Assembly: GCA_026770705.1 (NCBI GenBank)
Contig: JANJGN010000150.1
Location: 248,001-312,000 of the forward strand
Direction of reading: 5' to 3'
Length of the DNA stretch: 64,000 bases
From: Isurus oxyrinchus
Taxonomy: Eukaryota
The notes beneath the pieces were generated by a model. The model worked only from the letters and a program-made list of their open reading frames with translations, did no database searches and had not been told where the DNA came from. The position numbers and the translations under genes are program-made. Below, in pieces: positions 30,369 to 62,154 of the stretch; within the stretch, counting starts at the first letter, position 1, and every line of letters begins with the position of its first letter.

Positions 30369-31060
30369 GTAATATCATCATCAGCTCGAACAGATTTATG
30401 TTTAACAGTCTTTGTAAAAGATCATTCTTATCTCTTTATCTCTGTAACCTCCTGCAACTCACCCAAACAACTTCCCAGATCTCTGTGTTACTCCAATTCC
30501 GGCCTCTTGACCATCCCCCGATTCCCATCACTCCAATACTGGCGGCCGTGCCTTCAGCTGCCTGGGGCCTGAGCTCTGGAATTCACTCCCTAAACCTCGG
30601 GGATGGAGGAGATCAGAGGGTTTCATTTTACTGACAATCACCACGACAACATCACAGCTGCAGTCAGAATAGACAGAGAGTCCAGCCCTCACACTTCCTG
30701 CACAGTTTCACCATAGCAACCACAATAAAGAAGTAAAATAACTGAAAGTTAAACCGAAGCCAAACCAGTCGGTGTAGAGAGATGAGATGTTTACACAGTT
30801 TCCCTGTGTATCTTGTAGACACTGTGTTGGGTGGAAGACTGGCTTCACTAAACATGGTCCTGAGGACCATGAGCCAATGTAGAATGAACTTGTCCACTCC
30901 TGTGACCAGGATTCTCTTCCATCCATTGTGAAACCTTGGGGAGTTCCTTGTGAGTCCTGTAGATGGTCCACACAGCAGCCACTGTGCCCCAGTGATGGAG
31001 GGAGTGGATATCAAGTCTAGTGGATTGACAAACCATCCAGAGTTAAATATTGACATTTCT

Positions 31061-38009: not shown

Positions 38010-39782
38010 TGGAAGGGGAGCCAATCAATCGGGCTGCTTTGTCCTGGATGGTGTCAAGCTTCTTGAGTGTTGTTGGAGCTGCACTCATCCAGGCATGTGG
38101 AGAGTATTCCATCACACTCCTGACTTGTGCGTTGTAGATGGTGGACAGGCTTTGGGGAGTCAGGAGGTGAGTTACTGTCTGCAGGGTTCCCAGCCTCTGA
38201 CCTGCTCTTGCAGCCACAGTGTTTATATGGCTGGTCCAGTTCAGTTTCTGCTCAATGGTAACTCCCAGGATGTTGATATTGGGGGATTCAGTGATGGTAA
38301 TGCCATTGAATGCCAAGGGGCGATGGTTATGAATGGTCTGTGGGATATTCTGGTACAAAATGTCAACACTCGGACTCCAGATGCAATATTCAAGTGGTTC
38401 CTTTATTAGGCATGTGGGGAGCAAACGCTGAGCAGTCCAGGCGCTTCTCCACCGAAGTTCAAATGAGCACAGTTTATATATTTTTTACTCTCAGTTACAA
38501 GGTAATGGTATTAGTTAGACAAAGGCCACAGCACAATGACCCTCCGGTGGGCTGATAATTGTGTTCTTGTACAGTAATTACAGGGCAGAGACTGGCTATT
38601 GTCCTTTTGAGACAGCAAAGAATCTATGTTTGTTCGATACAAAAGGTTTCCGGAGGCTGACTGGATGTGGTTCAAGGCCATCGGACGGTGTGAAATAACC
38701 TTCCCCAATTCTTGATTGAGTCACCCTGTGTCCTTGTGTGTGTGTCTCCCATTTCCTCATTGCAAATTTCCAGCTGAGCCCTCTGTACAGGTTTTTAGCT
38801 TTCACGTAAGGATGTGATTGTCTGTGTACGCTTTGTCACCCTAGCTGCTGGTCCTGGCTGGCTCTTTAAAATAAATCCAAATTTTCTGCGCCTTCAGTTA
38901 GATTCTCTCTTGTTGGAGCTGGTCATTGCCTGGCACTTGTGTGGCATGAATGTTACTTGTCACCTGTCAGCCCAAGCCTGGTTGTTGTCCAGGTCTTGCT
39001 GCATTTGGACATAACTTGCTTCAGTATCTGAGGAGCCATGAATGATGCTGAACATTGTGCAAACATCAGCAAACATCCCCACTTCTGACCTTATGATGGA
39101 AGGAAGGTCATTGATGAAGCAGTTGAAGATGTTTGAGCCTAGGACACTACCCTGAGTAACTCCTGCAGTGATGTCCTGGAACTGAGATGATTGACCCCCA
39201 ATAATCACAACCATCGTCCTTTGTGCTGGGTATGACTCCAAGCAGCAGAGAGTTTTCCCCCGATTCCCATTGACTCCAGTTTTGCTCGGGCTCCTTGTTT
39301 TGCCACACTCAGTCAAATGCTGCCTTGATGTCAAGGGCAGTCACTCTCACCTCACCTCTGGAGTTCAGCTCATTTGTGCATGTTTGAACCAAGGCTGTAA
39401 TGAGGCCAGGAGCTGAATGATCCTGGTGGAACACAAACTGAGCGTCAGTGAGCAGGTTCTTGGTAAGCAGGTGCTGCTTGCAAGCGCTGTTGATGACCCC
39501 TTCCATCACTTTAGTAATGATCAAGAATAGACTGCTGGGGAATTGGCTGGGTTGGATTTGTCCTGCTTTTTGTGTACAGGACGTACCCCATAGCCGGGTA
39601 GTTGCCAGTGTTGCAGCTGTACTAGAAAATTCCAGAAAAGCTTGGCTAGGGGCGCAGCAAGTTCTGGAGCACAAGTCTTCAGTACTATTGCTGGAATAAT
39701 GTCAGGGTCTGGAGCATTTGCAATATCCAGTGCCTTCAGCCCTTCCTTGATATCACGTGGAATTAATCGAATTGGCTAAAGA
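38010..39782 (-). mobile_element. CR1/L2-clade LINE RT fragment interrupted by a solo LTR
   Basis: ALDIKAAFD, GVTQGSVLG..FINDL..MFADV, ILGVTIEQKLNWTSHI, QVRSVMEYSP. Confidence 0.9.
38330..38896 (-). mobile_element. Solo LTR, 567 bp
   Basis: TGAA...TTCA termini and 4-bp TSD GTTA (38326-38329, 38897-38900). Minus-strand TATA near 38478, AATAAA near 38405. The LINE sequence resumes exactly across it. Confidence 0.85.
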
Positions 39783-40439
39783 TTGTACCTTTCGCTCACT
39801 CTGTAACTCTCCCTTTCCTGTTAATTTCTCTCTCTTGGACAATCTCTCTTCTCTTTTCACTTTCCCTCACTCTGCATCTCTTTAATTTCTCCCTCTGTCA
39901 CTCTCTCCCACCTATTTTCTTTCCCTTTCACCCCTCCCCGTCCCACTCTCTGTCTCTCTCTTCCAATCCCTCCCTCCCCCATTCCATCCCTCTCTCCGAC
40001 TCTCGAATCCCAGCCTCTCTTTAACCCACTCCCAGGCTGGATCAGTCTCCCTCTCACTATTCCCGGCGTGGGTTACATTTAAAATTCCTGTGGGGATATG
40101 TTCACTTCCTTGGAATTGCCTCTTCCCAGCTTTGCAAAAAAATTGAGGGGGGGCTCGATTTCAAACATGCCTCCTGAGTATAACCGAGACAGACTGCCAC
40201 TGAAATCAGCTTGAAATCAGAAAACTTTCTGTGGAAGAAACGAGCAGGGAGAAACCTTAAAATAAGGAATGAATTTCCACCTACCGTGTCCGGGGAATCC
40301 ACAGATTTCTCAATCGTCGAAGAACCTAAAGCAGTGTCAACCTGCAAAAAGAAAGAATTTATCAGGGAGAAAGTGAGAGGAGGATTGAGGGAGAGGGAGA
40401 GAGAGAGAGAGAGGTACAGGAGAGAGAGGGGGAGGAGGA

Positions 40440-41010
40440 CAGACTTGCATTTCTCTAACGCCTTTCACCACATCCCAAAGCATTTCACAGCCACTGAAGG
40501 ATGTTTTTGAAGTGCACTCACACTGTAGGAAATGTGGCAGCTGATTTGTGCACAGCAAGATCCCACAAATAGCAATGTGATCATGGCCTAGATCATCTGT
40601 TTTTGGTGATGTTGGTTGAGGGATAAATATTGGTCCCAGGACACCGGGGAGAACACCCCCTGCTCTTCCTCCAAATAGTGGCTGTGGGATCTTTCACACC
40701 CGCCCGAGAGGGCAGACGGGGGACTCAGTTTAATGTCTCATTCAACATTGTTGTGCTCCCTCAGTACTAACCCTTTGACACTGCAGCACTCCCTCAGTAC
40801 TGACCGTCCGACAGTGCAACACTTCCACAGTACTGACCCTGTAACAATGCAGCACTTCCTCAGTACTGACTTCCGACAGTATAGCACTCACTCAGTACTG
40901 TCCCTCCAATAGTGCAACACTTCCACACTACTGACCCTCTGACAGTGCAGCACTCCCTCAGCACGGAGTGTTGACCTACGTTATGGGACTGAATTCCCTG
41001 GAGTGAGACT
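40440..41010 (-). mobile_element. Deu-domain SINE with an internal 33-bp expansion
   Basis: Recognisable Deu-domain text (ccccgtctgccctctc..aagatccca..gaagagcagggg..aatatttatccctcaaccaacatcac). Confidence 0.75.
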
Positions 41011-41039
41011 CAGACCAGAGATTTAGGTAGGGTTGTTCC

Positions 41040-41880
41040 GGCTGGAGGAGGTTACAGAGATAGGGAGGGTTGTAGAGGCTGTAGGAGGTAACAGAGATAG
41101 GGAGGATTCTAGAAGCTGTAGGAGGTTACAGAGATAGGGAGGGTTGTAGGGGCTGTAGGAGGTTACAGAGATAGGGAGGTGAGTAGGGGCTGTAGGAGGT
41201 TAAAGAGATGGGGGGGTTGTGGGGGCTGGAGGAGGTTACAGAGGTAGGGAGGGTTGTAGAGGCTGGAGGAGGTTACCAAAATAGATACTGTTGTAGGGGC
41301 CACAGTAGGTTACAGAGATAGGGAGAGTTATAGTGTGGAGAGGACGTTATAGAGTTCATGAGCATTGTAGGGGCTGGAGGAGGTTACAGTGATTCTGAGG
41401 GTCGTGGGGCCTGGAGGAGGTTACAGAGATAGGGAGGGTTGTAGGGTCTGGAGGAGGTTACAGAGATAGGGAGGGTTGTAGGGGCTGGAGCAGGTTACAG
41501 AGATAGGGAGGGTTGTAGGGTCTAGAGGAGGTTACAGTGATCATGAGGGTTGTGGGGCCTGGGGGAGGTTACAGAGATAGGTAGGGTTGTAGGGGCTGGA
41601 GGAGGTAACAGAGATAGGGACAGTTGTAGGGGCTGGAGGAAGTTACAGAGATAGGGAGGGTTGTAGGGGCTGGAGGAGGTTACAGAGATAGGGAGGGTTG
41701 TAGGGGCTGGAGGAGTTTACAGAGATAGGGAGGGTTGTACGGGCTGGAGGAGGTTACAGAGATAGGGAGGGTTGTAGCGGCTGGAGAAGGTTACAGAGAT
41801 AGGGAGGGGTGTAGGGGCTGGAGGAGGTTACAGAGATAGGGAGGGTTGTAAGGCCTGGAGGAGGTTACAGAGATAGGGAG
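41040..41880 (+). repeat. About 37-bp minisatellite (ggggctggaggaggttacagagatagggagggttgta)
   Basis: Tandem periodicity; inverted copy at 55190-55995. Confidence 0.95.
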
Positions 41881-42244
41881 TCGCTGAGGAGGGATTGAAA
41901 ACAAGAATGAGAATTTCAGGGGAAACGACAGAAGGAAATGATGTTAAATTCATAGAGGGCGACAATATTAAAGGCACGAACATAATAATATCAAACTGCG
42001 GAAGAGACCAGTCTATCTGGGTGGTAGACGTAGAGTCATGTGCAAGAAACACCTCACCCAGAGGGACATCTCTTAGCTTACCCTCGACAAGGAGAAGAAG
42101 TGACTCAGCTGCAGGGAGAGCAGCAAAGTCAGAGTGAACAAGACAAGTCGCCATTTCATCTGGGAGCTTCCCATCTCTGCCTGTCTCTTCTGATCTTCTG
42201 GCTCTGCTTTGATGCTTTGGTTTGTAACTAGAGGAGCTTCCTGC

Positions 42245-42460
42245 TCTTATACCTGAAACACTTGAAGGGGACAGCCGCGGGTGGGTAGCTGTGTGGTATC
42301 ACACCCATTTCTGGATATTGCAGTGTCGATGTTCCCTGTCCCACTGGCCTGGGACCAGCAGTAAGGTCACTGGGACATTGACTGTCTGGCGCCGAGAACT
42401 ATCAGTCCCTCCGCAACGCCCTTCACCTTGTGCAAATATGTGTTCATATTGACGCAACAC
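42245..42460 (-). promoter_or_regulatory. Promoter of copy 1: TATA, GGCGCC (BMP-RE-like), two C/EBP-like sites
   Basis: TATAAGA near 42245-42251, GGCGCC 42388-42393, TTGCACAA 42428-42435, TTGCGTCA 42450-42457. Confidence 0.55.
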
Positions 42461-43119
42461 AACATAGCAAAAACATAGGGGCTGGTTCTTATGTCGGCAA
42501 ATCAGGTGAAGCGCACGCCCCCTAACCCCTTACTCCTCTCATTGCTACACTTACTATTTTACAAATTGTGTGCGTTGCTTTTATTTTGGACAAGGGGCCT
42601 CGAGGGGGAACTGATTTACAATTTGTAACCTCCTCCAGCCCCTACAACACTCCCTATCTCTGTAACCTCCTCCAGCCCCTACAACCCTCCCTATCTCTGT
42701 AACCTCCTCCAGCCCCTGTAACCCTCCCCATCTCTTGAAGGGTTCTCAAAATTTCCAACTGTCAAGGAACCCTGGGTTGGTGAGCGTGACCCCTGACCTC
42801 TCCTAGTGCAATTTAGTTAGGGTTTGGAAGTGGGACAAGGGTAAGGGCATTAGTAGCATGATTCTCCCTCGTTATGCCGTGTGTTCCCCATTCTTAACTC
42901 AGTGTACTTTGTAAGTCTGTATAATCTCAGTGTCATCCTAATGTTAGAAGTTCATTTGTGACTTCAGTAAACTCAGTTTTTGTCTTGCACCAAAACCAGT
43001 TGTCTGCTGCACTTTGTGACAAGCCCCGAATAAGTCCAAGGTCTAGAACCCAGGGAGTGGGAGTGATTCAGACGGCTCAGAAGTCGCAGGTGAAGCTGAC
43101 ACACACCACCACACTCTAC

Positions 43120-43565
43120 AAGGGGCTGAATGGCCTCCTCCTGTTCCTGTATAACGGACATAAGTGGCAGAATGGCCTCCTCCTGTTCCTGTACAACGGA
43201 CATAAGTGGCAGAATGGCCTCCTCTTGTTCCTGTGTAACGGACATAAGTGGCAGAATGGCCTCCTCCTGTTTCTGTGTAACAGTCTTGAGGGGGCTGAAT
43301 GGCCTCCTCCTGTTTCTGTGTAACAGTCTTGAGGGGGCTGAATGGCCTCCTCCTGTTCCTGTGTAACAGTCTTGAGGGGACTGAATGGCCTCCTCCTGTT
43401 CCTGTGTAACAGTCTTGAGGGGGCTGAATGGCCTCCTCCTGTTCCTGTGTAACAGTCTTGAGGGGACTGAATGGCCTCCTCCTGTTCCTGTGTAACAGGC
43501 TTGAGGGGGCTGAATGGCCTCCTCCTGTTCCTGTGTAACAGGCTCAAGGGGCTGAATGGCCTCCT
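43120..43565 (-). repeat. About 43-bp minisatellite family, reverse orientation
   Basis: gaatggcctcctcctgttcctgtgtaacag units. Confidence 0.92.
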
Positions 43566-43814
43566 TCTGCACTGTAAACTTGTTGTGATACTGTAACTGC
43601 CTCTTTGGTTTCATTCAGCTGAATCTTCAGCTCTTCAGTCTCTTCCTTGTATCTCTTGCCTTCCTCCTGGAACATTGGACATGGTTGGGTCTTCCCTGCC
43701 AACTGTTTCTTCAGTTTGCTCAGAGCGGCACAGAATTCGCTTTCTTTCTCTTCAGGATTTTCCAGTGGAACCAACTCTGACCTGAGGGACACTTGCAGCC
43801 TGTGAGGATGCTTC

Positions 43815-44932
43815 AATTCTTCAAACTCATTCCGAGATACACTCTCATATTCCCCCAGCAACTCAGCAACTCCTCCAGTGAAACATTTCAGAGCAGCTGA
43901 GCTTGGTTTTCTGGAACCAGTCTCGGCCCAGAAGACTAGGGCCCTCACCTGTCGCTATGATCACTGGAAGCTGGGCTGTCTGCTGCCTGTAGGACACAGG
44001 TACTGGGATGAGGTCCTTTCCCTGTATGGATTCTCCAGTGTGTGTCTTCAGCTGATCCATTGTTGGCTCTAAATTCAGCGTCTGGGTTCCTTCATTTAGC
44101 TGTTTAAATGTGGGCTCTTCCACCACTGTGTCTGAGGCTCCCGTATCTGCCCCATTACTAGTGGCTGCCCATTCACTTGGGTTGTGATGGTTATAGGTTC
44201 AGTTTTTACCACTGTGACATTGGACAGGGAATAGACATCGGTATCAGCAGCTTCAGGCTCTGTGATATTATTCACTTCCATCATGTTGGTGCACTGTCTG
44301 ATGGGCTGTCTCGATTTCACCCTGCATTGCTTTATTACCCACCCCTTTCTTGTGGCAGTGATGGCATTCTGCCCCCTTGAACCTGCAGGTGTCCAGTGCG
44401 TGCTCAATGCCCCCCACATCGAGAACAGGCCAACTTCGGAGTTGCTGCTGAAATACTCCCACGAAGCCTTTTAGTTTCTGGAGCGGCAGAGACTGTCTCT
44501 CGCTTGGCGGCTGTCTCTCTCCCTCTCTCTCCAGTTTGAGCCTCACGCCCGGTGGTTGTTTCCTGTCCCAGCTGAGGACTGGCGCCATGTTGTACATCCT
44601 GTAAATCCCGCCAGTCTCTCCCAGCACTTTCCATGCCTGGCGCTATTTCCATGGTGCGTTTCAAATCGATGTCGGCTTCTGCGAGTAAACGGCTCTGAAT
44701 GGCGTTGGGGTGAACGACACAAACCAATCGGCCCCGCAACATGTCATTGAGTGTGTCTCCGAGGTCCCAGTGCTCAGTCACCTGCTTCCACTTCACTGTA
44801 TAGGTTGCGATGGACTCTCCCGGGGCCCTTACTCTGGAGTTAAACTTAAACCTTTTCATTATTACCCACGGCTTCAGCTGAAAATACATCTTCATGAGGT
44901 CGACTAATTGGTGAAAAGATTTAGAATTGGGT
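43815..44932 (-). mobile_element. Degenerate Gypsy gag-protease fragment
   Basis: KRFKFNSRVRAPGESI..LNDMLRGRLVC, Zn-knuckle CSRCGGH and CHHCHKKG, GPSLLGRDW. Related to the element at 3106. Confidence 0.88.
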
Positions 44933-45222
44933 GTAATACACGTCACTGTCTTCAGCTCTGAGACTGTCAATCCTCACCAAACAATTCTTCCCTTCCAAGT
45001 CGCCGATTATTTTAGCACGTCCCACGAATGTGGCCATCCCATAGTTGGGATCTTTGGTATATGTGATGATATATTTCCATCTATACCAATATTTATACCA
45101 AGCTCCGTGCAGTGCTGTGTAAGAGTGGGAAGGAAAGTCAAAGCTACACGGAATAACCACACAAGAGCTGCTGATGGCCCTCCGAGGCAGCGCCTTCATA
45201 GACCATCCCTCTGACGTCACTC
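44921..45222 (-). pseudogene. Gene D V-set exon (MAG/sialoadhesin-like), truncated
   Basis: GWSM..SSCVVIPCSFDFP..LHGAWY..FVGRAKIIGDLEGKNC..DSDVYY, then Gypsy-derived TQF*. Acceptor cctttcag. Confidence 0.85.
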
Positions 45223-45289
45223 CTGAAAGGCAACAAGGGAGGGGACTGAACATCAAAAAGCAGAATATTACTTCAATTGAGAGAGTCTA

Positions 45290-47516: not shown

Positions 47517-47879
47517 AACTGTCGTAATTCAGATGATGTTTGAAATTAGCAACATGCCTCGTGTAACATTCTATATCATCAGCTCAATATAACCAGATTA
47601 GTCTTGTACGTTTCACTTCACTGCAAATTGTTCATGGTTTCATTTCCTTGTTAACCAGGCTCATGTGATCACTATTTTTAAATAATGTTTGTTATTTGGA
47701 ACAAGGGGCCATGCCTGAACAGATAACTGTCGGATCAAGCAGCTGGGTTTTTTCTTGAACCTTACTTCATTCTGTTGTTTGCTGCTGGACATGAGATCAT
47801 TAATGTGTGAATGTAGAATCGAAGTCACCTCAGTGAACAGCAGCATTGGTTGAACAGCCTGATCTGCAATAAGAACTGC

Positions 47880-48375
47880 TGAACACAATGTCCATTCAGA
47901 ACAGCTCGGTCCCCGATCAGAGAAACAGCCTCAGACAGAACCAACTGACGCTGGAATCCATACAATTCATCAACGTGTTGGGAGTTAGTTTGATGTCGGA
48001 GATGGAGTGTTACTGGGAAGGAGGGAACCCGTCAGGATGAACAGCTCGATGTACGACAAGGAAAGGATGAGCTAAGAGGGGTTGGTCACGGACAGACGGA
48101 GCGTGTGAAGACTCAACAAGCTAATGGCAGGTGAAGAGCTGGAAAGGTGTCTTTTCAACACAAGGTTTAGACACAGAACTCGATGTTTGATCGGGTATTT
48201 CAAACCAGAGAAACTCTTTACAGGGTGAATGGACCTTGTCAATAATCCATCCAGCCAACCTCGCCTGGAGATTAGTCCAATATTAGACACTAAACCGAGT
48301 CCCCCGTCTGCCCTCTCGGGCGGGTGTGAAAGATCCCACAGCCACTATTTGGAGGAAGAGCAGGGGGGAGATCTC
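47880..48375 (+). repeat. Inverted duplicate of 50175-50670
   Basis: Near-identical reverse complement; paired ORFs in the track. Confidence 0.9.
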
Positions 48376-49341: not shown

Positions 49342-49532
49342 NNNNNNNNNNNNNNNNNNNNNNNNNNNNNNNNNNNNNNNNNNNNNNNNNNNNNNNNNNN
49401 NNNNNNNNNNNNNNNNNNNNNNNNNNNNNNNNNNNNNNNNNNNNNNNNNNNNNNNNNNNNNNNNNNNNNNNNNNNNNNNNNNNNNNNNNNNNNNNNNNNN
49501 NNNNNNNNNNNNNNNNNNNNNNNNNNNNNNNN
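49342..49532. other. Assembly gap
   Basis: 191 N. Confidence 1.
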
Positions 49533-50844
49533 ACAGTTACACACGTTGCTAGGGACCACTTTTCCGCCTCTCTGTCAGACTGTGTGTATCTGACAGCAGG
49601 TCAGGCAGAAATAGTCCAGAATGCGCTGTGGTTTTGTAGCATTGAAACAACGACAGGAACTAAATGAGTGCTGCACCAAATAAAGACATGGAGTGACCAC
49701 ACCAAAAAACCACGTGACTTCCCCAGTTTCACATCTCCCTCAAACACAGAAAAACTGGGTTAACACTGACCCTCCTCCCAGAGCCAGTTCACCTCGTGTC
49801 CGATGCAGTCAGGAGAGGAAGATCATCTCTCCTCCGATCCTGCTAAACTGAACATTTCCAGAATTAGATCAGCTCCCTGAAGTGTCTCCAGTTAGACATT
49901 CATCTGACAGGATTGACTCTACAACCCTGGGGACTCATTCTCCTGTAAGTAAAACACTTGCTGCTCCTGTCAAATCTCTTCTGTACAGCATGGTCTCTGG
50001 ATGTCCCAGAACACTTTACAACTGAGTGAACCCTTTTTTTGAAGTGTGGTTACTGTTGTAATGTAGGAAACGCAGCAGCCAATTAGCGCACAGCAAGCTC
50101 CCACAAACAGCAATGTGATCATCTGTTTTTGGTGATGTTGGTTGAGGGATAAATATTGGTCCCAGGACACCGGGGAGATCTCCCCCCTGCTCTTCCTCCA
50201 AATAGTGGCTGTGGGATCTTTCACACCCGCCCGAGAGGGCAGACGGGGGACTCGGTTTAGTGTCTAATATTGGACTAATCTCCAGGCGAGGTTGGCTGGA
50301 TGGATTATTGACAAGGTCCATTCACCCTGTAAAGAGTTTCTCTGGTTTGAAATACCCGATCAAACATCGAGTTCTGTGTCTAAACCTTGTGTTGAAAAGA
50401 CACCTTTCCAGCTCTTCACCTGCCATTAGCTTGTTGAGTCTTCACATGCTCCGTCTGTCCGTGACCAACCCCTCTTAGATCATCCTTTCCTTGTCGTACA
50501 TCGAGCTGTTCATCCTGACGGGTTCCCTCCTTCCCAGTAAAACTCCATCTCCGACATCAAACTAACTCCCAACACGTTGATGAATTGTATGGATTCCAGC
50601 GTCAGTTGGTTCTGTCTGAGGCTGTTTCTCTGATCGGGGACCGAGCTGTTCTGAATGGACATTGTGTTCAGTACTGATCCTCCGACAGTGCAGCACTCCC
50701 TCAGTACTTACCCTCTGACAGTGCAGCACGCCCTCAGTACTGATCCTCTGACAGTGCAGCACTCCCTCACCACTCCCTCACTGGGGAGAATCTACCTGGG
50801 TTTTGAGCTGAAATCATGAGCAGGTCTTAAAACATTCTGTATCA

Positions 50845-51730
50845 GAGAGAGAGAGAGTGTCTGAGAGAGAGAGAGAGACAGAGAGACTGTGTGAGAGAGA
50901 AAAAGAGATAGAGAGTGTGCATGTGTGAGGGCGAGTGTTTGTATATGAGGGAGAGAGTGTGCATGTGAGAGTGTGTGAGAGAGAGTGTGTGGGAGAGAGC
51001 GTGTGTTTGTGACAGAGAGTGTGTGTGTGTGTGCGAGGGAGAGAAAGAGAGAGACAGCAGAAGATCGAGATGAAGAGAAATGTTAAATGTTTGAGAGAGA
51101 GAGAATGTGTGTGTCTGAGAGAGAGAGTGTGTGTGTGTGAGAGAGAGTGTGTGCTTGACAGAAAGAGAGATTGTGTTAGTTTTAGGGAAAGTTTGTGAGT
51201 GTGTGAGAGAGTGTTTGTGTCTGAGAGAGAGAGAGAATGTATTTGAGGGAGGGAGACAGAGAGAATGTGTATGTGAGAGAGAGAGAGAGAGCAGAAGAGT
51301 GCGATAGAGAGAGATTGTGAGTGTTAGAGAGAGAATGTCTGTGTGTGTGAGAGAGAGATAGAGCAGAAGAGTGTGACAGAGAGAGATTGTGAGTGTTAGA
51401 GAGAGAATGTGTGTGTGTGTGAGAGAGAGATAGAGCAGAAGAGTGTGATAGAGAGAGATTGTGAGTGTTAGAGAGAGAATGTGTGTGTGAGAGAGAGAGA
51501 GAGATAGAGCAGAAGAGTGTGATAGAGAGAGATTGTGAGTGTTAGAGAGAGAATGTGTGTGTGTGTGAGAGAGAGATAGAGCAGAAGAGTGTGATAGAGA
51601 GAGATTGTGAGTGTTAGAGAGAGAATGTGTGTGTGTGTGAGAGAGAGATAGAGAAAGATTGTGAGTGTTAGAGAGAGAATGTGTGTGTGAGAGAGAGAGA
51701 TAGAGCAGAAGAGTGTGATAGAGAGAGTTC
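50845..51730 (+). repeat. GA/GT low-complexity tract and compound repeat
   Basis: Its right part is the reverse complement of 46355-47275. Confidence 0.9.
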
Positions 51731-54236: not shown

Positions 54237-54610
54237 TAGAAACTTACCTGTCAGAAGCCAGTTTATGTTGATGTGAGTCTGAGTCGATGACTGAACCCAG
54301 TTGGTGACTTGTTCCATACAAAGCAAGAACGTTCATGCCCTTCAATGTTCCTGGATAAACCATGAACAAAGCTGGTGACAGACAGTCTCCACATGGTAAA
54401 CACTGACCGATCAACACATGACATGGCTGTTAACCCTTAAACCTCAGCGTAAATCAGTTCCCCCTCGAGGCCCCTTGTCCAAAATAAAAGCAACGCACAC
54501 AATTTGTAAAATAGTAAGTGTAGCAATGAGAGGAGTAAGGGGTTAGGGGGCGTGCGCTTCACCTGATTTGCCGACATAAGAACCAGCCCCTCTGTTTTTG
54601 CTATGTTGTG

Positions 54611-54823
54611 TTGCATCAATATGAACACATATTTGCACAAGGTGAAGGGCATTGCGGAGGGACTGATAGTTCTCGGCGCCAGACAGTCTATGTCCCAGTG
54701 ACCTTACTGCTGGTCCCAGGCCAGTGGGACAGGGAACATCGACACTGCAATATCCAGAAATGGGTGTGATACCACACAGCTACCCACCCCCGGCTGTCCC
54801 CTTCAAGTGTTTCAGGTATAAGA
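54611..54823 (+). promoter_or_regulatory. Promoter of copy 2: C/EBP-like sites, GGCGCC-N5-GTCT BMP/Smad element, TATA
   Basis: TTGCATCA 54611-54618, TTGCACAA 54633-54640, GGCGCC-agaca-GTCT 54675-54689, TATAAGA 54817-54823. Confidence 0.6.
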
Positions 54824-55189
54824 GCAGGAAGCTCCTCTAGTTACAAACCAAAGCATCAAAGCAGAGCCAGAAGATCAGAAGAGACAGGCAGAGATGGGAA
54901 GCTCCCAGATGAAATGGCGACTTGTCTTGTTCACTCTGACTTTGCTGCTCTCCCTGCAGCTGAGTCACTTCTTCTCCTTGTCGAGGGTAAGCTAAGAGAT
55001 GTCCCTCTGGGTGAGGTGTTTCTTGCACATGACTCTACATCTACCACCCAGATAGACTGGTCACTTCCGCAGTTTGATATTATTATGTTCGTGCCTTTAA
55101 TATTGTCGCCCTCTATGAATTTAACATCATTTCCTTCTGTCATTTCCCCTGAAATTCTCATTCTTGTTTTCAATCCCTCCTCAGCGACT

Positions 55190-55995
55190 CCCTATCTCTG
55201 TAACCTCCTCCAGCCCGTACAACCCTCCCTATCTCTGTAAACTCCTCCAGCCCCTACAACCCTCCCTATCTCTGTAACCTCCTCCAGCCGCTACAACCCT
55301 CCCTATATCTGTAACCTCCTCCACTCCCTACAACAATCCCCATCTCTGTAACTTCCTCCAGCCCCTACAACTGTCCCTATCTCTGTTACCTCCTCCAGCC
55401 CCTACAACACTCCCTATCTCCGTAACCTCCTCCAGCCCCTACAACCCTCCCTATCTCTGTAACCTCCTCCAGCCCCTATAAACCTCCCTATCTCTGTAAC
55501 CTCCCCCAGGCCCCACAACCCTCATGATCACTGTAACCTCCTCTAGACTCTACAACCCTCCCTATCTCTGTAACCTCCTCCAGACCCTACAACCCTCCCT
55601 ATCTCTGTAACCTCCTCCAGGCCCCACGACCCTCAGAATCACTGTAACCTCCTCCAGCCCCTACAATGCTCATGAACTCTATAACGTCCTCTCCACACTA
55701 TAACTCTCCCTATCTCTGTAACCTACTGTGGCCCCTACAGCAGTATCTATTTTGGTAACCTCCTCCAGCCTCTACAACCCTCCTTACCTCTGTAACCTCC
55801 TCCAGCCCCCACAACCCCCCCCATCTCATTAACCTCCTACAGCCCCTACTCACCTCCCTATCTCTGTAACCTCCTACAGCCCCTACAACCTTCCCTATCT
55901 CTGTCACCTCCTACAGCCTCTAGAACCCTCCCTATCTCTGTTACCTCCTACAGCCTCTACAACCCTCCCTATCTCTGTAACCTCCTCCAGCCGGA
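55190..55995 (-). repeat. About 37-bp minisatellite
   Basis: Reverse complement of 41040-41880. Confidence 0.95.
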
Positions 55996-56024
55996 ACAAC
56001 CCTACCTAAATCTCTGGTCTGAGT

Positions 56025-56725
56025 CTCACTCCAGGGAATTCAGTCCCATAACGTCAGTCAACACTCCGTGCTGAGGGAGTGCTGCACTGTCAGAGGGTCA
56101 GTAGTGTGGAAGTGTTGCACTATTGGAGGGACAGTACTGAGTGAGTGCTATACTGTCGGAGGTCAGTACTGAGGGAGTGCTGCTGTGTCGGAGGGTCAGT
56201 ACTGAGGGAGCGCTGCACTGACGGAGGGACAATACTGTGGGAGTGCAGCACTATCGAAGGGTTAGTACTGAGGGAGTGCTGCTGTGTCGAAGGGTTAGTA
56301 CTGAAATAGAGCTGCACTGACGGAGGGACAGTACTGAGGGAGCGCAGCACTATCGAAGGGTTAATACTAAGGGAGTGCTGCAGTGTCAAAGGGTTAGTAC
56401 TGAGGGAGCACAACAATGTTGAATGAGACATTAAACCGAGTCCCCCGTCTGCCCTCTCGGGCGGGTGTGAAAGATCCCACAGCCACTATTTGGAGGAAGA
56501 GCAGGGGGTGTTCTCCCCGGTGTCCTGGGACCAATATTTATCCCTCACCCAACATCACCAAAAACAGATGATCTAGGCCATGATCACATTGCTATTTGTG
56601 GGATCTTGCTGTGCACAAATCAGCTGCCACATTTCCTACAGTGTGAGTGCACTTCAAAAACATCCTTCAGTGGCTGTGAAATGCTTTGGGATGTGGTGAA
56701 AGGCGTTAGAGAAATGCAAGTCTGT
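56025..56725 (+). mobile_element. Deu-domain SINE with an internal 33-bp expansion
   Basis: Inverted copy of 40440-41010 with more 33-bp units. Confidence 0.75.
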
Positions 56726-58409
56726 CCTCCTCCCTCTCTCTCTCCTGTACCTCTCTCTCTCTCTCTCCCTCTCCCTCAATCCTCCTCTCACTTTCTCCCT
56801 GATAAATTCTTTCTTTTTGCAGGTTGACACTGCTTTAGGTTCTTCGACGATTGAGAAATCTGTGGATTCCCCGGACACGGTAGGTGGAAATTCATTCCTT
56901 ATTTTAAGGTTTCTCCCTGCTCGTTTCTTCCACAGAAAGTTTTCTGATTTCAAGCTGATTTCAGTGGCAGTCTGTCTCGGTTATACTCAGGAGGCATGTT
57001 TGAAATCGAACCCCCCCCGCCCCCTTTTTTTGCAAAGCTGGGAAGAGGCAATTCCAAGGAAGTGAACATATCCACACAGGAATTTTAAATGTAACCCACG
57101 CCGGGAATAGTGAGAGGGAGACTGATCCAGCCTGGGAGTGGGTTAAAGAGAGGCTGGGAGTCGAGAGTCGGAGAGAGGGATGGAATGGGGGAGGGAGGGA
57201 TTGGAAGAGAGAGACAGAGAGTGGGACGGGGAGGGGTGAAAGGGAAAGAACATAGGTGGGAGAGAGTGACAGAGGGAGAAATTAAAGAGATGCAGAGTGA
57301 GGGAAAGTGAAAAGAGAAGAGAGATTGTCCAAGAGAGAGAAATTAACAGGAAAGGGAGAGTTACAGAGTGAGCGAAAGGTACAAAAATAGTGTGAGAGAG
57401 AGGGAGAGATACAGAGTGGGAGAAGGAGACAGGGGAGAGAGAGGGAGAGAGACAGGAAAAGGGAGAGAGGAGAGAAAGATTGGGAGAGAGGGCAATTGAG
57501 AGGAAGAGTAGAAGAGAGAGAGACAGGGAGAGGAGGAGTGGATGAGAGGAAGAGAGAGAGAGATATGGAGCAGGAGAACACCTCCTCCGGTCCCGATGTT
57601 CCTCCAAAATCTCTGACATTACTGCATCTCCCGGGTCCCCCGATTCCCAACGCTCCACCATTGGTGGCCGTGCCTTCAGCTGCCTGGGGCCCTGAGCTCC
57701 GGAATACCCTCCCTTAACCTCTCTGCCTCTCTCTCTCTCTCTCCTTTAAGACGCTCCTTAAAAACTGACATCTTTGACCAAGCTTTTGGTCACCTAACCC
57801 TAATATCTCCATATGTGACTCAGTGTTAGACTTCTCTCTGATTTACGCTCCGGTAATGTGGGCTGGGACATTTTGCAATATCAGAGGCGCTGTGTAAATG
57901 CAAGTTGTGAGTGTTATGTGGAAGGGAGACCCCAGGCGGCAGTCAGTGCCAGAGACTGGAGTCATTGTGTGCAGACCGTATCTAATCTCTCCGAATGCAC
58001 AATCGGTTTGACTGTCAGCCAAAGCACTTTTGATATTTGATCCTTCTAACTGTTTATAACCAGGCCTACATCAAACACCGAGAGGCTGGTTAATCAACAG
58101 ACACCTTAGAGGATCAAGTGAAAGACAAAGAGGACTTGCATTTCTCTAGCGCCTTCCAACACATCAGGACGTCCCAAAGTGTTTCGCAGACAATCAAGTG
58201 CTTTTTTTCTTTCATGTGAGGTCACTGATGTACTGTGGGAAAAGAATCAGCCATTGGCGCACAGTAAGATCCCACAGACAGCAGCATGATAATGACCAGC
58301 GCGCTCCCAGTACTTGCACTGCAAGTGTCAGTTCAGGATGTGTGCTCGATTCTCTGCAACTCTCAGCTCTGAGTTAAAAGGACCACCAGGCATAATTGAG
58401 AAATTACCG

Positions 58410-58832
58410 AGCTGTCGGAGGGTCAGTACCGGCGGGGGGGCAGGACAGTCGGAGGGTCAGTACTGAGGGGGTGCTGCATTGTCAGACGGTCAGTCTTGGA
58501 GTGCTGCACTGTCAGAGGGTCAGTACCGGCGGGGGACTGCACAGTCGGAGGGTCAGTACTGAGGGGGTGCTGCATTGTCAGACGGTCAGTACTGAGGGAG
58601 TGCTGCACTGTCAGAGGGTCAGGGCTAAGGGAGTGCTGCACTGATGGAGGGTCAGTACTGAGTGAGTGCTGCACTGTCAGAGGGTCAGTGCTAAGGGAGT
58701 GCTGCACTGTTGGAGGGTCAGTGCTAAGGAAGTGCTGCACTGTACAGAGGGAGTGTGAGACTGACAGAGGGTCACTATTGAGGATGTGCTGCACAGTCGG
58801 GGGGGTCAGTACTGAGGGAGCACTGCACTGCC
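58410..58832 (-). repeat. 33-bp satellite, diverged
   Basis: Tandem units. Confidence 0.88.
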
Positions 58833-58975
58833 ATAGGTGGTTTCTTTCAGATGACATGAGAGAGAGGGTTAAACCCACTGAGACAAGACTGACACTAATG
58901 AGGCTGCTCAATAATTTAACCCTATCAGTGCCAGTAAATAATGTGAGGATGTCTTCTGTTTCCATTTCTCTGTAG

Positions 58976-59224
58976 GGTAAACAGAACGTGCTGATTACTG
59001 AGCCCCGGAACACAACCAGAGACACAACTAGTGAGGGGGAGACCCCAGCTCCCCGGGGTCTCTCTGAAGGTGCATTGGGAGGCGATGCTGGACATTGGCA
59101 CATCGACAATCCCAACGGCCTTCTCTACGCCAATCCCCAAGTATTGAGGATGTCCAGTGATGATGGGTCTGTCCACAGGGAAGAGGAGACGGAATACGCA
59201 CAGATCAGGTTCGAGCATAACTGA
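58976..59224 (+). CDS. Orphan Siglec-type terminal cytoplasmic exon (LLYANP..TEYAQI), copy 1
   Basis: ccatttctctgtag acceptor, phase 0, 82 aa open. Two-Tyr layout with a C-terminal ITSM, like CD33-related tails. Confidence 0.75.
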   Translation, partial: GKQNVLITEPRNTTRDTTSEGETPAPRGLSEGALGGDAGHWHIDNPNGLLYANPQVLRMSSDDGSVHREEETEYAQIRFEHN

Positions 59225-59421
59225 ATGAGAAATGGGGAGTGGGAGGGAGGAGGTGTGAGGGTGGGGGTAGTGATTGAGATTCCTGGGAACAGGAAACAAT
59301 CCACTGGGGGAGAGGGGGAGAGAGGGAGGAAGGGATGCGATTGGGCTGCGGTTGCTGTGGTTTGGAATGAAATGCTTCTCCAGAGAGGACTGGATGCTGA
59401 GCCACTGGGGATAGAGATTCA

Positions 59422-59456
<35 letters not shown>

Positions 59457-59794
59457 TCTTTGTCTTTCTTTCTGTGTCTGTCACTCATTCTCTATCTCCA
59501 GCTCCTCCTTTAAGATGCCCGTTAATAACTGACTTTGTTGACTCAGCTGTTGGTCTCCTGTCCCTTATATCTCCTCATGTGCCTCAGAGTCAGGTGAAGA
59601 TGTGACTAACAATTCCCGGATGAGCCTTGGGACATTTTGCTACATTAAAGGTCCTATATAAATGCAAGTAGTTGCAGTAAGTCTGATCTGCTTCGATTAA
59701 CAATGGAACCACAAAGGCTCCTTCGACAGGGCGTGTGTGCAGGAGGATCCCAATAAATACATTGAGCTGTGAGATTTTTAATTCTTACATCGAA

Positions 59795-60242
59795 TGTGGC
59801 TGTCACTGGTGATGCCAGCATTAATGCCCATCCCTAATTGCCCTTGAGAAGGTGGTGGTGATCAGCCTTCTTGACCCGCTGCAGTCCATGTGGTGTAGGT
59901 ACACCCACAGTGCTGTTAGGGAGGGAGTTCCAGGATTTTGACCCAGTGACAGTGAAGGAACGATGATATATTTCCAAGTCAGGATGGTGAGTGGCTTGGA
60001 GGGGAACTTCCAGGTGGTGGTGTTCCCATGTGTCTGCTGCCCTTGTCCTTCTAGATGGTAGAGGTCGTGGGTTTGGAAGGTGCTGTTGAAGGAGCCTTGC
60101 TGAGTTGCTGCAGTGCATCTTGTAGATGGTACACACACTGCTTCCACTGTGTGTTCGTTGTGGAGGGAGTGAATGTTTAATGTGGTGGATGGGGTGTAGA
60201 TCAATCGGGCTGCTTTGTCCTGGATGGTGTCAAGCTTCTTGA
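59795..60242 (-). mobile_element. LINE 3' fragment
   Basis: CTIYKMHC..FTVTGSKSWNSLP..HHHLLKGN. Confidence 0.85.
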
Positions 60243-60375
60243 TTCTGTGCTTTGTATAGAACTGATTTAAAGAGACAGTCCCAGTCGTTGGTCTAAGATT
60301 ACAGTGGGCTCTGTGTCTGTGCTACACTGACTCTCTGCTATATGATAACCACAGTGTGATATTTTGTTATTACAG

Positions 60376-60457
60376 GAGAAAGACAGCGATGGAGGAGAGA
60401 GTTTCAGGGACCAGTGACATTGCATTGACCCCCAGTCCACTCTCTGTGAAGCACCAG
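60376..60457 (+). CDS. Post-TM cytoplasmic exon (RKTAMEERVSGTSDIALTPSPLSVKHQ)
   Basis: ttattacag acceptor, cag|gtacag donor. 82 bp, phase 2-0, basic start. In phase with the 61906 exon. Confidence 0.6.
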
Positions 60458-61479
60458 GTACAGGAGCTGTTTACACTCATTCCAAAGCTTCAATCTCAGT
60501 GTGTAGACAACACATGTCCCAGATTCCCAGCCCAGTTACCCACTGATTTGTACCTGTGGAGTCAGCAATGGTTCAGTATCATGCTGTCTCTCTGTTATGA
60601 CACAGCAACTGGTAAAGACTGTTGTTTAAAATCCCAGAGGGAAACTTTAAACAACTGTCATAACCTATATTTCCCAGTGGAATGTTTGAGATGCAGCTCT
60701 AAATTCAGGAATAAGACCATCAGTTCTTGAGATGGGTTTATATCAAACTACATGAGACATTTATTAATTTTCACAAGTTAATCATATGCACATGGCTACA
60801 AACTAGTATTATCATAACTATTTAACAAATTCCCAAACTAACGTCCTCTAAGACAACCCATAGACTTTAAGCAGATTCCAAGCGAAGCATTTTCACCTCA
60901 GAAATTCCAAATGAGGTTCCTTTCACTTTGGTTCCTTTGCAGACAGGTGTAGGCTTACAGCTGCTTTGATGTTACAAGCCTCTGCTCTGCACACACAAAA
61001 CTGCTCAAGTTATACCCAGCTCTTCTCTTTGAATGTAAATTCTCATTGTATCATCAGGACCTTTGATCTCCATCTCTTCTAACTATAAATCCCGTTTCAT
61101 AGTATCAATTTTATTAGTAATATAAACATTGATTGGTTTAAGAATTCACTCCCAGGCTTTGAATCCTCCTTTTAAAAATGCAATATGCCTCTTTACCTCT
61201 TTGTTTACATCTCAAAACTACTATACATAAAAGTACCCAGACCGGCTGTCTTTAATCCAATTAAAACACACACACACACACCCACAGAATAAACCTCTGT
61301 TTAAAAAGACAATTTCCAATTACAATACATACATTAATAGATTCATAACGCTCAGTCTCTGACCCTTCATCTCTCTCTCTCTCTCTCATCCTCTCTCTGA
61401 TTACAAGATTCATGTTATTGAGCCTCACACCAGGCACCTGAGTGCAGAATCCAAGCCGACACTGGCCAGAGCCATTACC

Positions 61480-61762
61480 GAGGGAGTGCAAGACTGACAG
61501 AGGGTCAGTACTGAGGGAGTGCTGCACTGTCAGAGGGTCAGTACTGAGGGAGTGCTGCACTGTCAGAGGGTCAGTACTGAGGAAGACCTGTACTGTCGGA
61601 GGGTCAGTACTGAGGGAGTGCTGCACTGCTGGAGGATCAGTACTGAGGGAGCGCTGCACTGTCGGAGGGTCAGTACTGAGGGAGTGCTGCACTGTTGGAT
61701 GGTCAGCATTGAGGAAGTGCTGCACTATCGAAGGGTCAGTACTGAGGGAGCACTGCACTGCC
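61480..61762 (-). repeat. 33-bp satellite
   Basis: Tandem units. Confidence 0.88.
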
Positions 61763-61905
61763 ATAGGTGTTTTCTTTCATAAGACATGTGAGAGAGGGTT
61801 AAACCCACTGACCCACGACTGACACTAACGAGGCTGCAGAATATTTTAACCCTATCAGTGCCAGTAAATGATGTGAGGATGCCTTCTGTTTCCATTTCTC
61901 TGTAG

Positions 61906-62154
61906 GGTAAACAGAACGTGCTGATTACTGAGCCCCGGAACACAACCAGAGACACAACTAGCGAGGGGGAGACCCCAGCTCCCCGGGGTGTCTCTGAATG
62001 TGCAGTGGGAGGCGATGCTGGACATGGGAACCCCGACAATCCCGACGAGTTTCTCTACGCCAATCCCCAAGTCTTCAGGGTGTCCAGTGGTGATGGGTCT
62101 GTCCACAGGGAAGAGCAGACGGAATACGCACAGATCAGATTCAAGAGAAACTGA
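61906..62154 (+). CDS. Siglec-type terminal cytoplasmic exon (FLYANP..TEYAQI), copy 2
   Basis: 61720-62353 is a direct duplicate of 58790-59420. Same length and frame, both Tyr kept. Confidence 0.75.
   Translation, partial: GKQNVLITEPRNTTRDTTSEGETPAPRGVSECAVGGDAGHGNPDNPDEFLYANPQVFRVSSGDGSVHREEQTEYAQIRFKRN

Follow-up and report, generated by a model that had tools for sequence, protein, structure and literature searches.

Does a locus with the exon layout of a hepcidin gene, but without the cysteine core of the hormone, encode a disabled hepcidin, a new secreted peptide or nothing that works? The question arises in a stretch of 64,000 nucleotides from Isurus oxyrinchus (hereafter the window), where a first-pass annotation had proposed a hepcidin-derived gene of three exons, present in two inverted copies and either a pseudogene or repurposed. 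Human HAMP consists of three exons, among them a signal exon and a short pro-exon, and its neighbourhood includes the Siglec-family gene MAG. The evidence presented below indicates that the window probably holds two recent, inverted and transcribed truncated duplicates of a hepcidin gene, which have lost the core exon and give rise to chimeric or junk mRNAs. The features on which this reading is based are collected in Table 1.

Table 1. Features of the hepcidin-derived copies and their surroundings (positions in the window; a slash marks a splice border or joint).
Feature	Position	Strand	Remarks
Copy B, 2.9-kb duplicated block	54449-57384	+	Promoter, exon 1, intron 1, exon 2, 505-bp tail with putative 'exon 3'
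Copy A, inverted duplicate of the 2.9-kb block	39783-42619	-	Self-BLAST and MAFFT against copy B
Inner palindrome arms	47879-48375 and 50671-50175		99.4% identical; flank N run 49342-49532
TATAAG box, copy B	54817-54822	+	77 nt upstream of ATG
Hepcidin exon 1, copy B	54894-54986	+	Signal peptide, 31 aa; donor AGG/gtaagc, used in RNA
Hepcidin exon 1, copy A	42082-42174	-	Identical to B
Intron 1, copy B	54987-56822	+	Excised in RNA contigs of X1, X2 and X5 (joint 54986/56823)
37-bp tandem array	55188-56008		Inside intron 1, copy B
33/99-bp SINE-like array	56071-56409		Inside intron 1, copy B
Hepcidin exon 2, copy B	56823-56879	+	Pro-region, 19 aa; acceptor ...ttgcag/, donor ACG/gtaggt; both used in RNA
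Hepcidin exon 2, copy A	40285-40341	-	Identical to B
GT..AG interval (proposed intron 2), copy B	56880-56964	+	85 bp
Putative 'exon 3', copy B	56965-57003	+	WQSVSVILRRHV-TGA; in sequence, unsupported as exon
Putative 'exon 3', copy A	40161-40199	-	Identical to B; crossed by unspliced RNA contig with copy-A variants
Cryptic exon start	58064-58093	+	Reads AYIKHREAG-stop; joint 56879/58064, GT..AG, X1 depth 844
Tyrosine-motif tail exon 1	58976-59224	+	82 aa + stop; joint 56879/58976, GT..AG, in frame, X1 depth 4352
Bridging exon	60376-60457	+	82 nt, between tail exons; joint 59208/60376; unique in window
Tail exon 2	61906-62154	+	Tandem duplicate of tail exon 1; 82% aa identity (tblastn); identical acceptor context
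Siglec-type V-set exon	44921-45256	-	Upstream of copy A; best PDB matches sialoadhesin (2.4e-10), MAG, Siglec-5/7/8/CD33
LINE reverse-transcriptase fragment	39309-39422	-	After copy A; AG acceptor, phase 0, DHSAPGLITALVQTCTNELNSRGEVRVTALDIKAAFD-stop

The signal peptide and pro-region encoded by exons 1 and 2 are homologous to those of hepcidin precursors. Exon 1 shares 29 of its 31 residues, and exon 2 shares 16 of 19, with P0003 of the basking shark Cetorhinus maximus (90% identity for the two exons), an 88-residue precursor in which Pfam recognises the hepcidin domain PF06446 at residues 53-87 (E 1.5e-11). This protein is isoform X2 of LOC144671611, which NCBI lists as an 'uncharacterized protein' with isoforms X1-X3 (P0001-P0003). 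When exon 1 was searched against 1.84 billion proteins, only two representatives were returned, both isoforms of that locus (E 8e-08). More distant relatives are the hepcidin-2-like proteins of Scyliorhinus canicula (P0004 and P0005), which have in common with the window a signal exon of the form MGSSQMK..LSH.FSLSK (20/31 identical) and a pro-exon of the form ..GSL..EKSV.SP.. (9/19 or 12/19). They display the same three-part layout and are complete, with an RQRR furin site and an eight-cysteine peptide, whereas the window copies lack both. Every exon was searched singly, by reference, and the product lengths given here are arithmetic only.

Exon 1, exon 2, the interval that follows them and their phase-0 borders, a phase common to all introns of the three-exon model, were located just where the first-pass annotation had placed them, and its derivation of the locus from hepcidin is borne out by the homology of these two exons. 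Their GT..AG joint occurs in RNA contigs from three runs (X1, X2 and X5) of one sample. One RNA contig covers 54850-54985 and joins exon 2; a contig that begins near 54850 cannot prove a start site. The RNA stems from only one individual, in tissues that are liver-like or of unknown kind, and run X4, from organism B, has no depth on exons 1 and 2 and says little either way. Since contigs were placed at an identity of at least 95% and exons 1 and 2 are shared with intact paralogues, the RNA is not certainly of this locus. Past exon 2, one loose end carries GSLLQRQ, with which exon 3 of an intact paralogue in the same organism begins.

The two inverted copies described earlier are both present, and the hepcidin-like span of three putative exons extends over 54894-57003 (+) in copy B and 42174-40161 (-) in copy A. 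Outside repeats, the duplicated block is 98.5% identical between the copies (self-BLAST, MAFFT), while the three 'exons' and the 85-bp interval are 100% identical. Across these 274 nt no difference is seen against about 4 expected (P ~0.02); for the 189 coding nt, the absence of any difference has P ~0.06. Such perfect identity over 274 nt fits gene conversion or recent copying, but also some constraint. Because the 85-bp 'intron' matches between the copies just as fully as the exons do, inter-copy identity is not a coding signal.

The inner palindrome arms around the N run form the centre of the inverted duplication, an arrangement that could also arise if a single copy were real and the second were an assembly artefact around the gap at 49342-49532. 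This explanation appears unlikely. It draws on the palindromic arms themselves, the inner ones nearly identical and ending beside the N run, and on RNA contigs over 57010-57074, which carry mostly copy-A letters and among which the copy-B form of the C tract is absent. An unspliced contig of run X2 (record 11) has all five copy-A letters, at 57010, 57021, 57023, 57024 and 57074, and one of run X1 combines the tract of copy A with the A of copy B at 57010. Against an artefact, the arms diverge by 1.5% in unique sequence and further in tandem arrays, more than the heterozygosity expected of a haplotype duplicate, where the expectation is itself an assumption. The flanks are also unlike, with a LINE after copy A and a GA-rich tract plus tail exons after copy B, and RNA contigs match both arrangements, the variants of X2 record 11 being those of copy A and the sequence past 57384 being of the B type. 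In that latter stretch, about one letter in 100 of the contigs departs from copy B, and an allele or a near-identical locus elsewhere in the genome may be their source.

The surroundings are of the MAG/CD22 type that had been anticipated: Siglec-type exons surround the hepcidin-derived ones, and the window contains further Ig exons together with tyrosine-motif tail exons. For the tail exons at 58976 and 61906, the name 'Siglec-type' is taken from genomic context. Repeats, too, link the window to the basking-shark locus. The putative LINE-derived exon after copy A matches the tail of P0001 in 33 of 37 residues, including the same stop (tblastn); it is the counterpart of the third exon in isoform X3, which thus ends like the sequence that follows copy A. 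The end of isoform X1 is repeat-derived, and the window contains this sequence too (31016-30849 and 14058-13894).

A difference lies in the third exon. Basking-shark isoform X2 has an intact hepcidin exon 3 (GSLLLREKR/MSHLSVCVYCCGCCNKKGTKKTCGYCCKL, PF06446), whereas the window copies are without such an exon. Pfam searches of window pieces gave no match to the hepcidin domain (PF06446), and tblastn of the P0003 exon 3 and mature peptide against the whole window gave none either. In Smith-Waterman alignments of hepcidin exon 3 with the 2 kb downstream of each copy, 196/200 and 98/200 shuffles reached the observed score. The cysteine core is therefore lacking, as the first-pass annotation had held, both downstream of either copy and elsewhere in the window. 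Each copy retains the hepcidin sequence from the promoter through exon 1 and intron 1 to exon 2 but has no core exon, as befits a truncated duplicate.

The first-pass annotation had attributed the loss of the core to a CGA>TGA change at the P1 arginine of a furin site, in a third exon reading WQSVSVILRRHV-stop. True shark hepcidin exon 3 opens with GS[LV]LLR[EQ][KR]R followed by M and carries eight cysteines, and the shark precursors show REKR or RQRR and then M. In the window, ..LRRHV runs straight into the stop; the P1 arginine is missing, nothing follows, and a furin site of the form RX(K/R)R before a mature peptide is absent. The local alignment of the putative 'exon 3' with true shark hepcidin exon 3 scores at or below the shuffled null, and by eye 21 nt of intact exon 3 taken from a loose end (GGCTCCTTGCTGCAGCGCCAG) agree with 56974-56994 at about 8/21 positions, no better than chance; nor does the putative exon show detectable similarity to the hepcidin domain of human HAMP. 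Beyond the stop, none of the frames encodes anything like the eight-cysteine peptide, and an ungapped alignment to GSLLLREKRM also sets the stop opposite Met rather than Arg. With no remnant of the cysteine core, a single CGA>TGA cannot be the lesion: the core exon itself has been lost and is not just interrupted by a nonsense codon. The parallel drawn with a tryptophan shortly before the polybasic site holds for human hepcidin and fails for the shark proteins, whose intact exon 3 opens without a tryptophan.

A real gene could nevertheless be proposed in which signal, pro-region and WQSVSVILRRHV make up a 62-codon precursor from which a new small peptide of hepcidin origin is secreted. In both copies, whose exons are identical, the model can be read without interruption, with canonical GT..AG borders and introns of phase 0; its promoter is presumably active, and exon 1 is spliced to exon 2. 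It is, however, very unlikely in view of the RNA. The joint of exon 2 to 56965 was not found among the best 15 of 71 RNA joints, though a rare splice there may hide among the 56 weaker ones, and unspliced contigs (56852-57073 and 56851-57143) cross both the 85-bp interval and 'exon 3'. In run X1 the bin of 'exon 3' has a depth of 830 against 134,517 for that of exon 2, about 160 times lower and equal to the intronic background (650-750 in neighbouring intronic contigs). The acceptor at 56965 is weak, with 10/17 pyrimidines, whereas that at 58976 is strong, with 14/17. Conservation of the 85-bp 'intron' to the same degree as the exons also speaks against such a gene, as do a WQSVSVILRRHV exon unlike any hepcidin exon 3 and the absence of this C-terminus among proteins that share exons 1 and 2.

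Reading straight through exon 2 and the interval is possible in both copies, as had been noted. The open stretch covers 56817-57065 in copy B and 40347-40102 in copy A, and unspliced RNA contigs are present for this 111-codon frame. Its C-terminus differs between the copies through a variable C/T homopolymer, and Pfam searches with exon 1 and with the unspliced reading returned only a chance match to DUF7503 (E 2.8). The frame has no family match; it was rejected as a gene and is taken as intron retention.

What the exon 2 donor does join, according to the RNA contigs, are foreign exons downstream of copy B, and the proposal of a repurposed secreted peptide finds no support. Two such joints were recorded, to tail exon 1 and to the cryptic exon at 58064, each in one contig of one run (X1) and one sample, and the assignment of the resulting chimeric transcript (56879/58976) to this locus is uncertain. 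By eye, tail exon 1 contains the motifs LLYANP (YxN) and TEYAQI (TxYxxI), and a search of the ESM Atlas with the tail exon gave no usable match. It has an internal donor at 59208, from which the joint to 60376 is found in X1, X2 and X5, and the bridging exon leads on from 60457 to the start of a tail exon, as indicated by a joint that 'goes back' and by the loose end GTAAACAGAACGTGCTG. The 233 nt of tail exon 1 up to this donor plus the 82 nt of the bridging exon keep the frame. Nothing in the window matches a 15-nt loose end that precedes the exon at 60376.

Could the fusion of hepcidin exons to tail exons be a working new gene, with a liver promoter, a signal peptide and one or two tyrosine-motif tails? 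The joint 56879/58976 is in frame, its contig has about six times the depth of the unspliced background in X1, and the onward joints 59208/60376 and 60457 to the tail preserve the frame. The proposal is still very improbable, for it is hard to see how a cytoplasmic signalling tail could act when it follows a secretory signal and the protein has no transmembrane segment, and the same donor also serves the 9-codon junk exon at 58064. The fusion was seen in a single contig of a single sample, and at the Cetorhinus locus no tail-exon fusion is annotated among the proteins sharing exons 1 and 2. About as improbable is a capture of the hepcidin promoter, signal and pro-piece that serves to express one or two Siglec-type tyrosine-motif tails, or else a novel short C-terminal peptide, in a liver-secreted product with its own function; the in-frame joints and the perfect identity of the copies would then have to reflect selection and not recency.

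Truncated duplicates thus remain the preferred reading, and a mechanism can be outlined for them. Fragments of a hepcidin gene would have been duplicated with the loss of exon 3, which carries the furin site and the eight-cysteine mature peptide, and the hepcidin promoter presumably still fires at these particular copies. Exon 2 would then possess a good donor without its native partner, so the spliceosome may take whatever acceptor lies downstream. In the arrangement of copy B, this would be the strong acceptor of an orphan Siglec-type tyrosine-motif tail exon 2.1 kb away, in frame and giving 31+19+82 codons, with the cryptic exon at 58064 used as well and a stop reached after 9 codons. In that of copy A, the likely partner, by analogy with basking-shark isoform X3, would be the LINE-derived exon. 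Some RNA remains unspliced through the 85-bp interval. In the predicted products, cytoplasmic-tail or junk sequence would follow the signal peptide and hepcidin pro-piece, and nothing would anchor them in the membrane; they are most likely non-functional by-products of segmental rearrangement in a hepcidin/Siglec cluster. The pseudogene option of the first-pass annotation was close to right.

No account of shark hepcidins in truncated or chimeric form came up in the literature search, where hepcidin figures only as one of the plasma proteins of the nurse shark (PMC9207270). With the hormone part missing, the copies have no bearing on iron regulation. Peptides containing VDTALGSSTIEK or spanning a junction, if matched beyond the pro-region, would indicate a translated product. 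For the annotation of shark genomes the finding is useful, since such loci belong neither among the hepcidin genes nor among new peptide genes. The shark hepcidin/Siglec cluster emerges as a churning, segmentally duplicated region, in which duplication carried along a very strong promoter but not its payload exon, and the promoter then came to drive chimeric transcripts. It exemplifies the beginnings of exon shuffling.

Translation and pattern search confirmed, letter for letter, the pieces described in the first-pass annotation. Copy B carries a 31-codon exon 1, a 19-codon exon 2, an 85-bp GT..AG interval and a proposed exon 3 reading WQSVSVILRRHV-TGA; each piece has exactly two matches in the window, the second set lying in copy A. 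Neither exon 1 nor the unspliced reading of exons 2-3 gave a Pfam family, and an exhaustive HMMER search of exon 1 against 1.84 billion representative proteins gave only two matches, identified by word-indexed search as isoforms X3 and X1 of basking shark (Cetorhinus maximus) LOC144671611. Isoform X2 of this locus (P0003, 88 aa) contains PF06446 Hepcidin at residues 53-87 (E 1.5e-11) and consists of three parts, MGSSQMKLRLVLFTLTLLLSLQLSHFFSLSK, VDSAVGSLTIEKSVDSPDT and GSLLLREKR-MSHLSVCVYCCGCCNKKGTKKTCGYCCKL. Since window exons 1 and 2 share 29/31 and 16/19 residues with the first two parts, and the catshark proteins already annotated as 'hepcidin-2-like' have the same layout, the proposed hepcidin derivation of exons 1 and 2 is beyond reasonable doubt. 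Hepcidin is also among the proteins listed for the nurse-shark plasma proteome (PMC9207270), and no publication describing truncated or chimeric copies of shark hepcidin emerged from a literature search.

Features of the two copies and their surroundings
Feature	Position	Strand	Remarks
Copy B	54449-57384	+	
Copy A	42619-39783	-	pieces at 42174-40161
Exon 1, copy B	from ATG at 54894	+	end AGG/gtaagc
Exon 2, copy B	56823-56879	+	acceptor ...ttgcag/, donor ACG/gtaggt; 85-bp interval directly 3'
Proposed exon 3, copy B	56965-57003	+	
TATAAG	54817-54822		-77 from ATG
GGCGCC	54675-54680		-219 from ATG
V-set exon	45256-44924	-	best PDB structure matches sialoadhesin, MAG, Siglec-5/7/8, CD33
Tyrosine-motif tail exons, tandem pair	58976 and 61906	+	
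Bridging exon	60376-60457	+	82 nt; links tail exons (58976-62154)
LINE exon	39422-39309	-	candidate exon; phase-0 AG acceptor, then DHSAPGLITALVQTCTNELNSRGEVRVTALDIKAAFD-stop
LINE reverse-transcriptase fragment	39309-39674	-	
Inner inverted pair	50175-51727 / 48375-46364		around N run 49342-49532
37-bp array, intron 1	55188-56008		22 copies, 81% matches
33/99-bp array, intron 1	56071-56409		resembles SINE tail
C/T homopolymer	57011-57031 / 40153-40136		variable; just 3' of the proposed stop codon

The MAG/CD22-type neighbourhood of HAMP is recovered as Siglec-like surroundings, from the V-set matches and the tail exons. The tails appear to be orphans, as the window contains, upstream of them, neither Ig nor transmembrane exons belonging to a plus-strand receptor. 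Within tail exon 1, an internal donor (59208) bypasses the first stop and, through the bridging exon, keeps the frame (233+82 nt). In the promoter region, the TATAAG is also kept in copy A, and an mRNA contig starts near 54850. The GGCGCC is likewise kept in copy A, a 6-mer that alone is not significant; in mammalian HAMP promoters this motif forms the BMP-responsive element core.

The proposed third exon fared differently. In all intact shark hepcidins compared, exon 3 begins GS[LV]LLR[EQ][KR]R/M, lacks a Trp in this stretch and continues with eight Cys. Neither exon 3 nor the mature part of P0003 found a tblastn match anywhere in the window, and Smith-Waterman comparison of hepcidin exon 3 with three-frame translations of about 2 kb 3' of each copy scored no better than shuffles (196/200 and 98/200 shuffled queries reached the observed score). 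On these searches, the cysteine core is absent from the copies, and a stop codon with a silent core behind it is excluded. Accordingly, the CGA>TGA change at the P1 Arg is ruled out as the lesion, the core being absent rather than cut off. The acceptor at 56965 is also weak, with 10/17 pyrimidines versus 14/17 at the tail exon acceptor, and the 56879/56965 joint is not among the best 15 of 71 joints (54750-60700, runs of one sample). The first-pass reading was therefore half right: hepcidin derivation, Siglec synteny and a pseudogene-like state, with the hepcidin front kept and the core exon absent, hold, whereas the third exon and nonsense mutation are not supported.

RNA contigs, rather than reads, were aligned to 54750-60700 from runs X1, X2 and X5, all made from a single sample of organism A. 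That the runs contain spliced RNA is evident from canonical joints located at exon borders. The exon 1-exon 2 joint (54986/56823) and the 59208/60376 joint occur in all three runs. From exon 2, X1 supports a phase 0 to phase 0 joint to tail exon 1 (56879/58976, depth 4352) and another to an exon reading AYIKHREAG-stop (56879/58064, depth 844), each of these chimeric joints on a single contig. Position 60457 is joined to a tail-exon start; this joint is displayed as 'goes back', tail exon 2 being beyond the aligned stretch. Unspliced contigs (56852-57073 in X1, depth 733; 56851-57143 in X2, depth 11.6) explain all depth over the proposed exon 3, whose X1 bin reaches 830 versus 134,517 for exon 2, with nearby intronic contigs at 650-750. 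The X2 contig carries copy A letters exactly at 57010, 57021, 57023, 57024 and 57074, indicating that copy A is transcribed as well. Intact paralogues whose exons are identical must supply most of the high exon 1-2 depth; one loose end continues from exon 2 with G+GCTCCTTGCTGCAGCGCCAG, which translates as GSLLQRQ, as a true exon 3 begins, and then enters Illumina adapter. Beyond 57384, contigs differ from copy B by about 1 letter in 100 (X1 and X2 at 57641, 57797, 57880, 58027, 58116, 58338 and 58342 within 57395-58414), so the transcribed locus may be an allele or a near-identical paralogue elsewhere.

Self-comparison resolves copies A and B as a 2.9-kb inverted duplication and reveals the inner pair, whose core (47879-48375 versus 50671-50175) is 99.4% identical, with tandem arrays at 80-86% beyond, and whose centre adjoins the N run. 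Together, 39.8-57.4 kb resembles an interrupted palindrome that may be genuine or in part an assembly effect. Long retroelement-like ORFs in a row at 43544-44970 (-), gag-like by eye and lying between the V-set exon (45256-44921) and copy A, may be the reason for the interruption of the palindrome arms here. Aligned with MAFFT, the copies show no difference in any of the three 'exons' or in the 85-bp interval (100% identity), and 15/1024 positions (1.5%) differ in the unique flanks. At this rate 2.8 differences would be expected in 189 coding nt (P(none) = 0.06), and because the intron-like interval is equally identical, exon identity is no coding-specific signal. Both intron 1 arrays recur at many window sites and form the bulk of the self-BLAST output. 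At the homopolymer, the form in copy A, a net 3 nt shorter, is also that of both RNA contigs; the copy B form, C8-G-C5-T7, appears in none of the RNA contigs and could reflect polymorphism or an error of assembly.

Homology between the copies stops at 39783/57384, where a 5'-truncated LINE starts in copy A. The candidate LINE exon downstream has 33/37 residues identical to exon 3 of basking-shark isoform X3 and shares its stop; the hepcidin-front/LINE arrangement is thus common to both sharks and predates the A/B duplication or conversion, which is 1.5% diverged. In the LINE fragment the frame ends directly behind ..IKAAFD, and isoform X3 has its stop at this codon too. This implies an old insertion, common to both species and exonised in basking shark. 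Repeat-like stretches at 31016-30849 (-) and 14058-13894 (-) share 77-84% identity with the C-terminal portion of isoform X1 (P0002), and in the one at 31016 the second codon is a stop.

The copies are thus probably truncated hepcidin duplicates with a still active promoter. Upon loss of the payload exon, the orphan exon 2 donor would pair with downstream acceptors, yielding chimeric mRNAs with the tail exon or tail-bridge-tail exons, as well as junk mRNAs with the cryptic exon or the candidate LINE exon. The in-frame fusion would comprise 31+19+82 codons by arithmetic only, and a function is unlikely because the product would put a secretory signal before a cytoplasmic tail and have no membrane anchor. 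Lacking the defining core and furin site, and keeping only the precursor front and synteny, these loci are hepcidin-derived fragments, not hepcidins.
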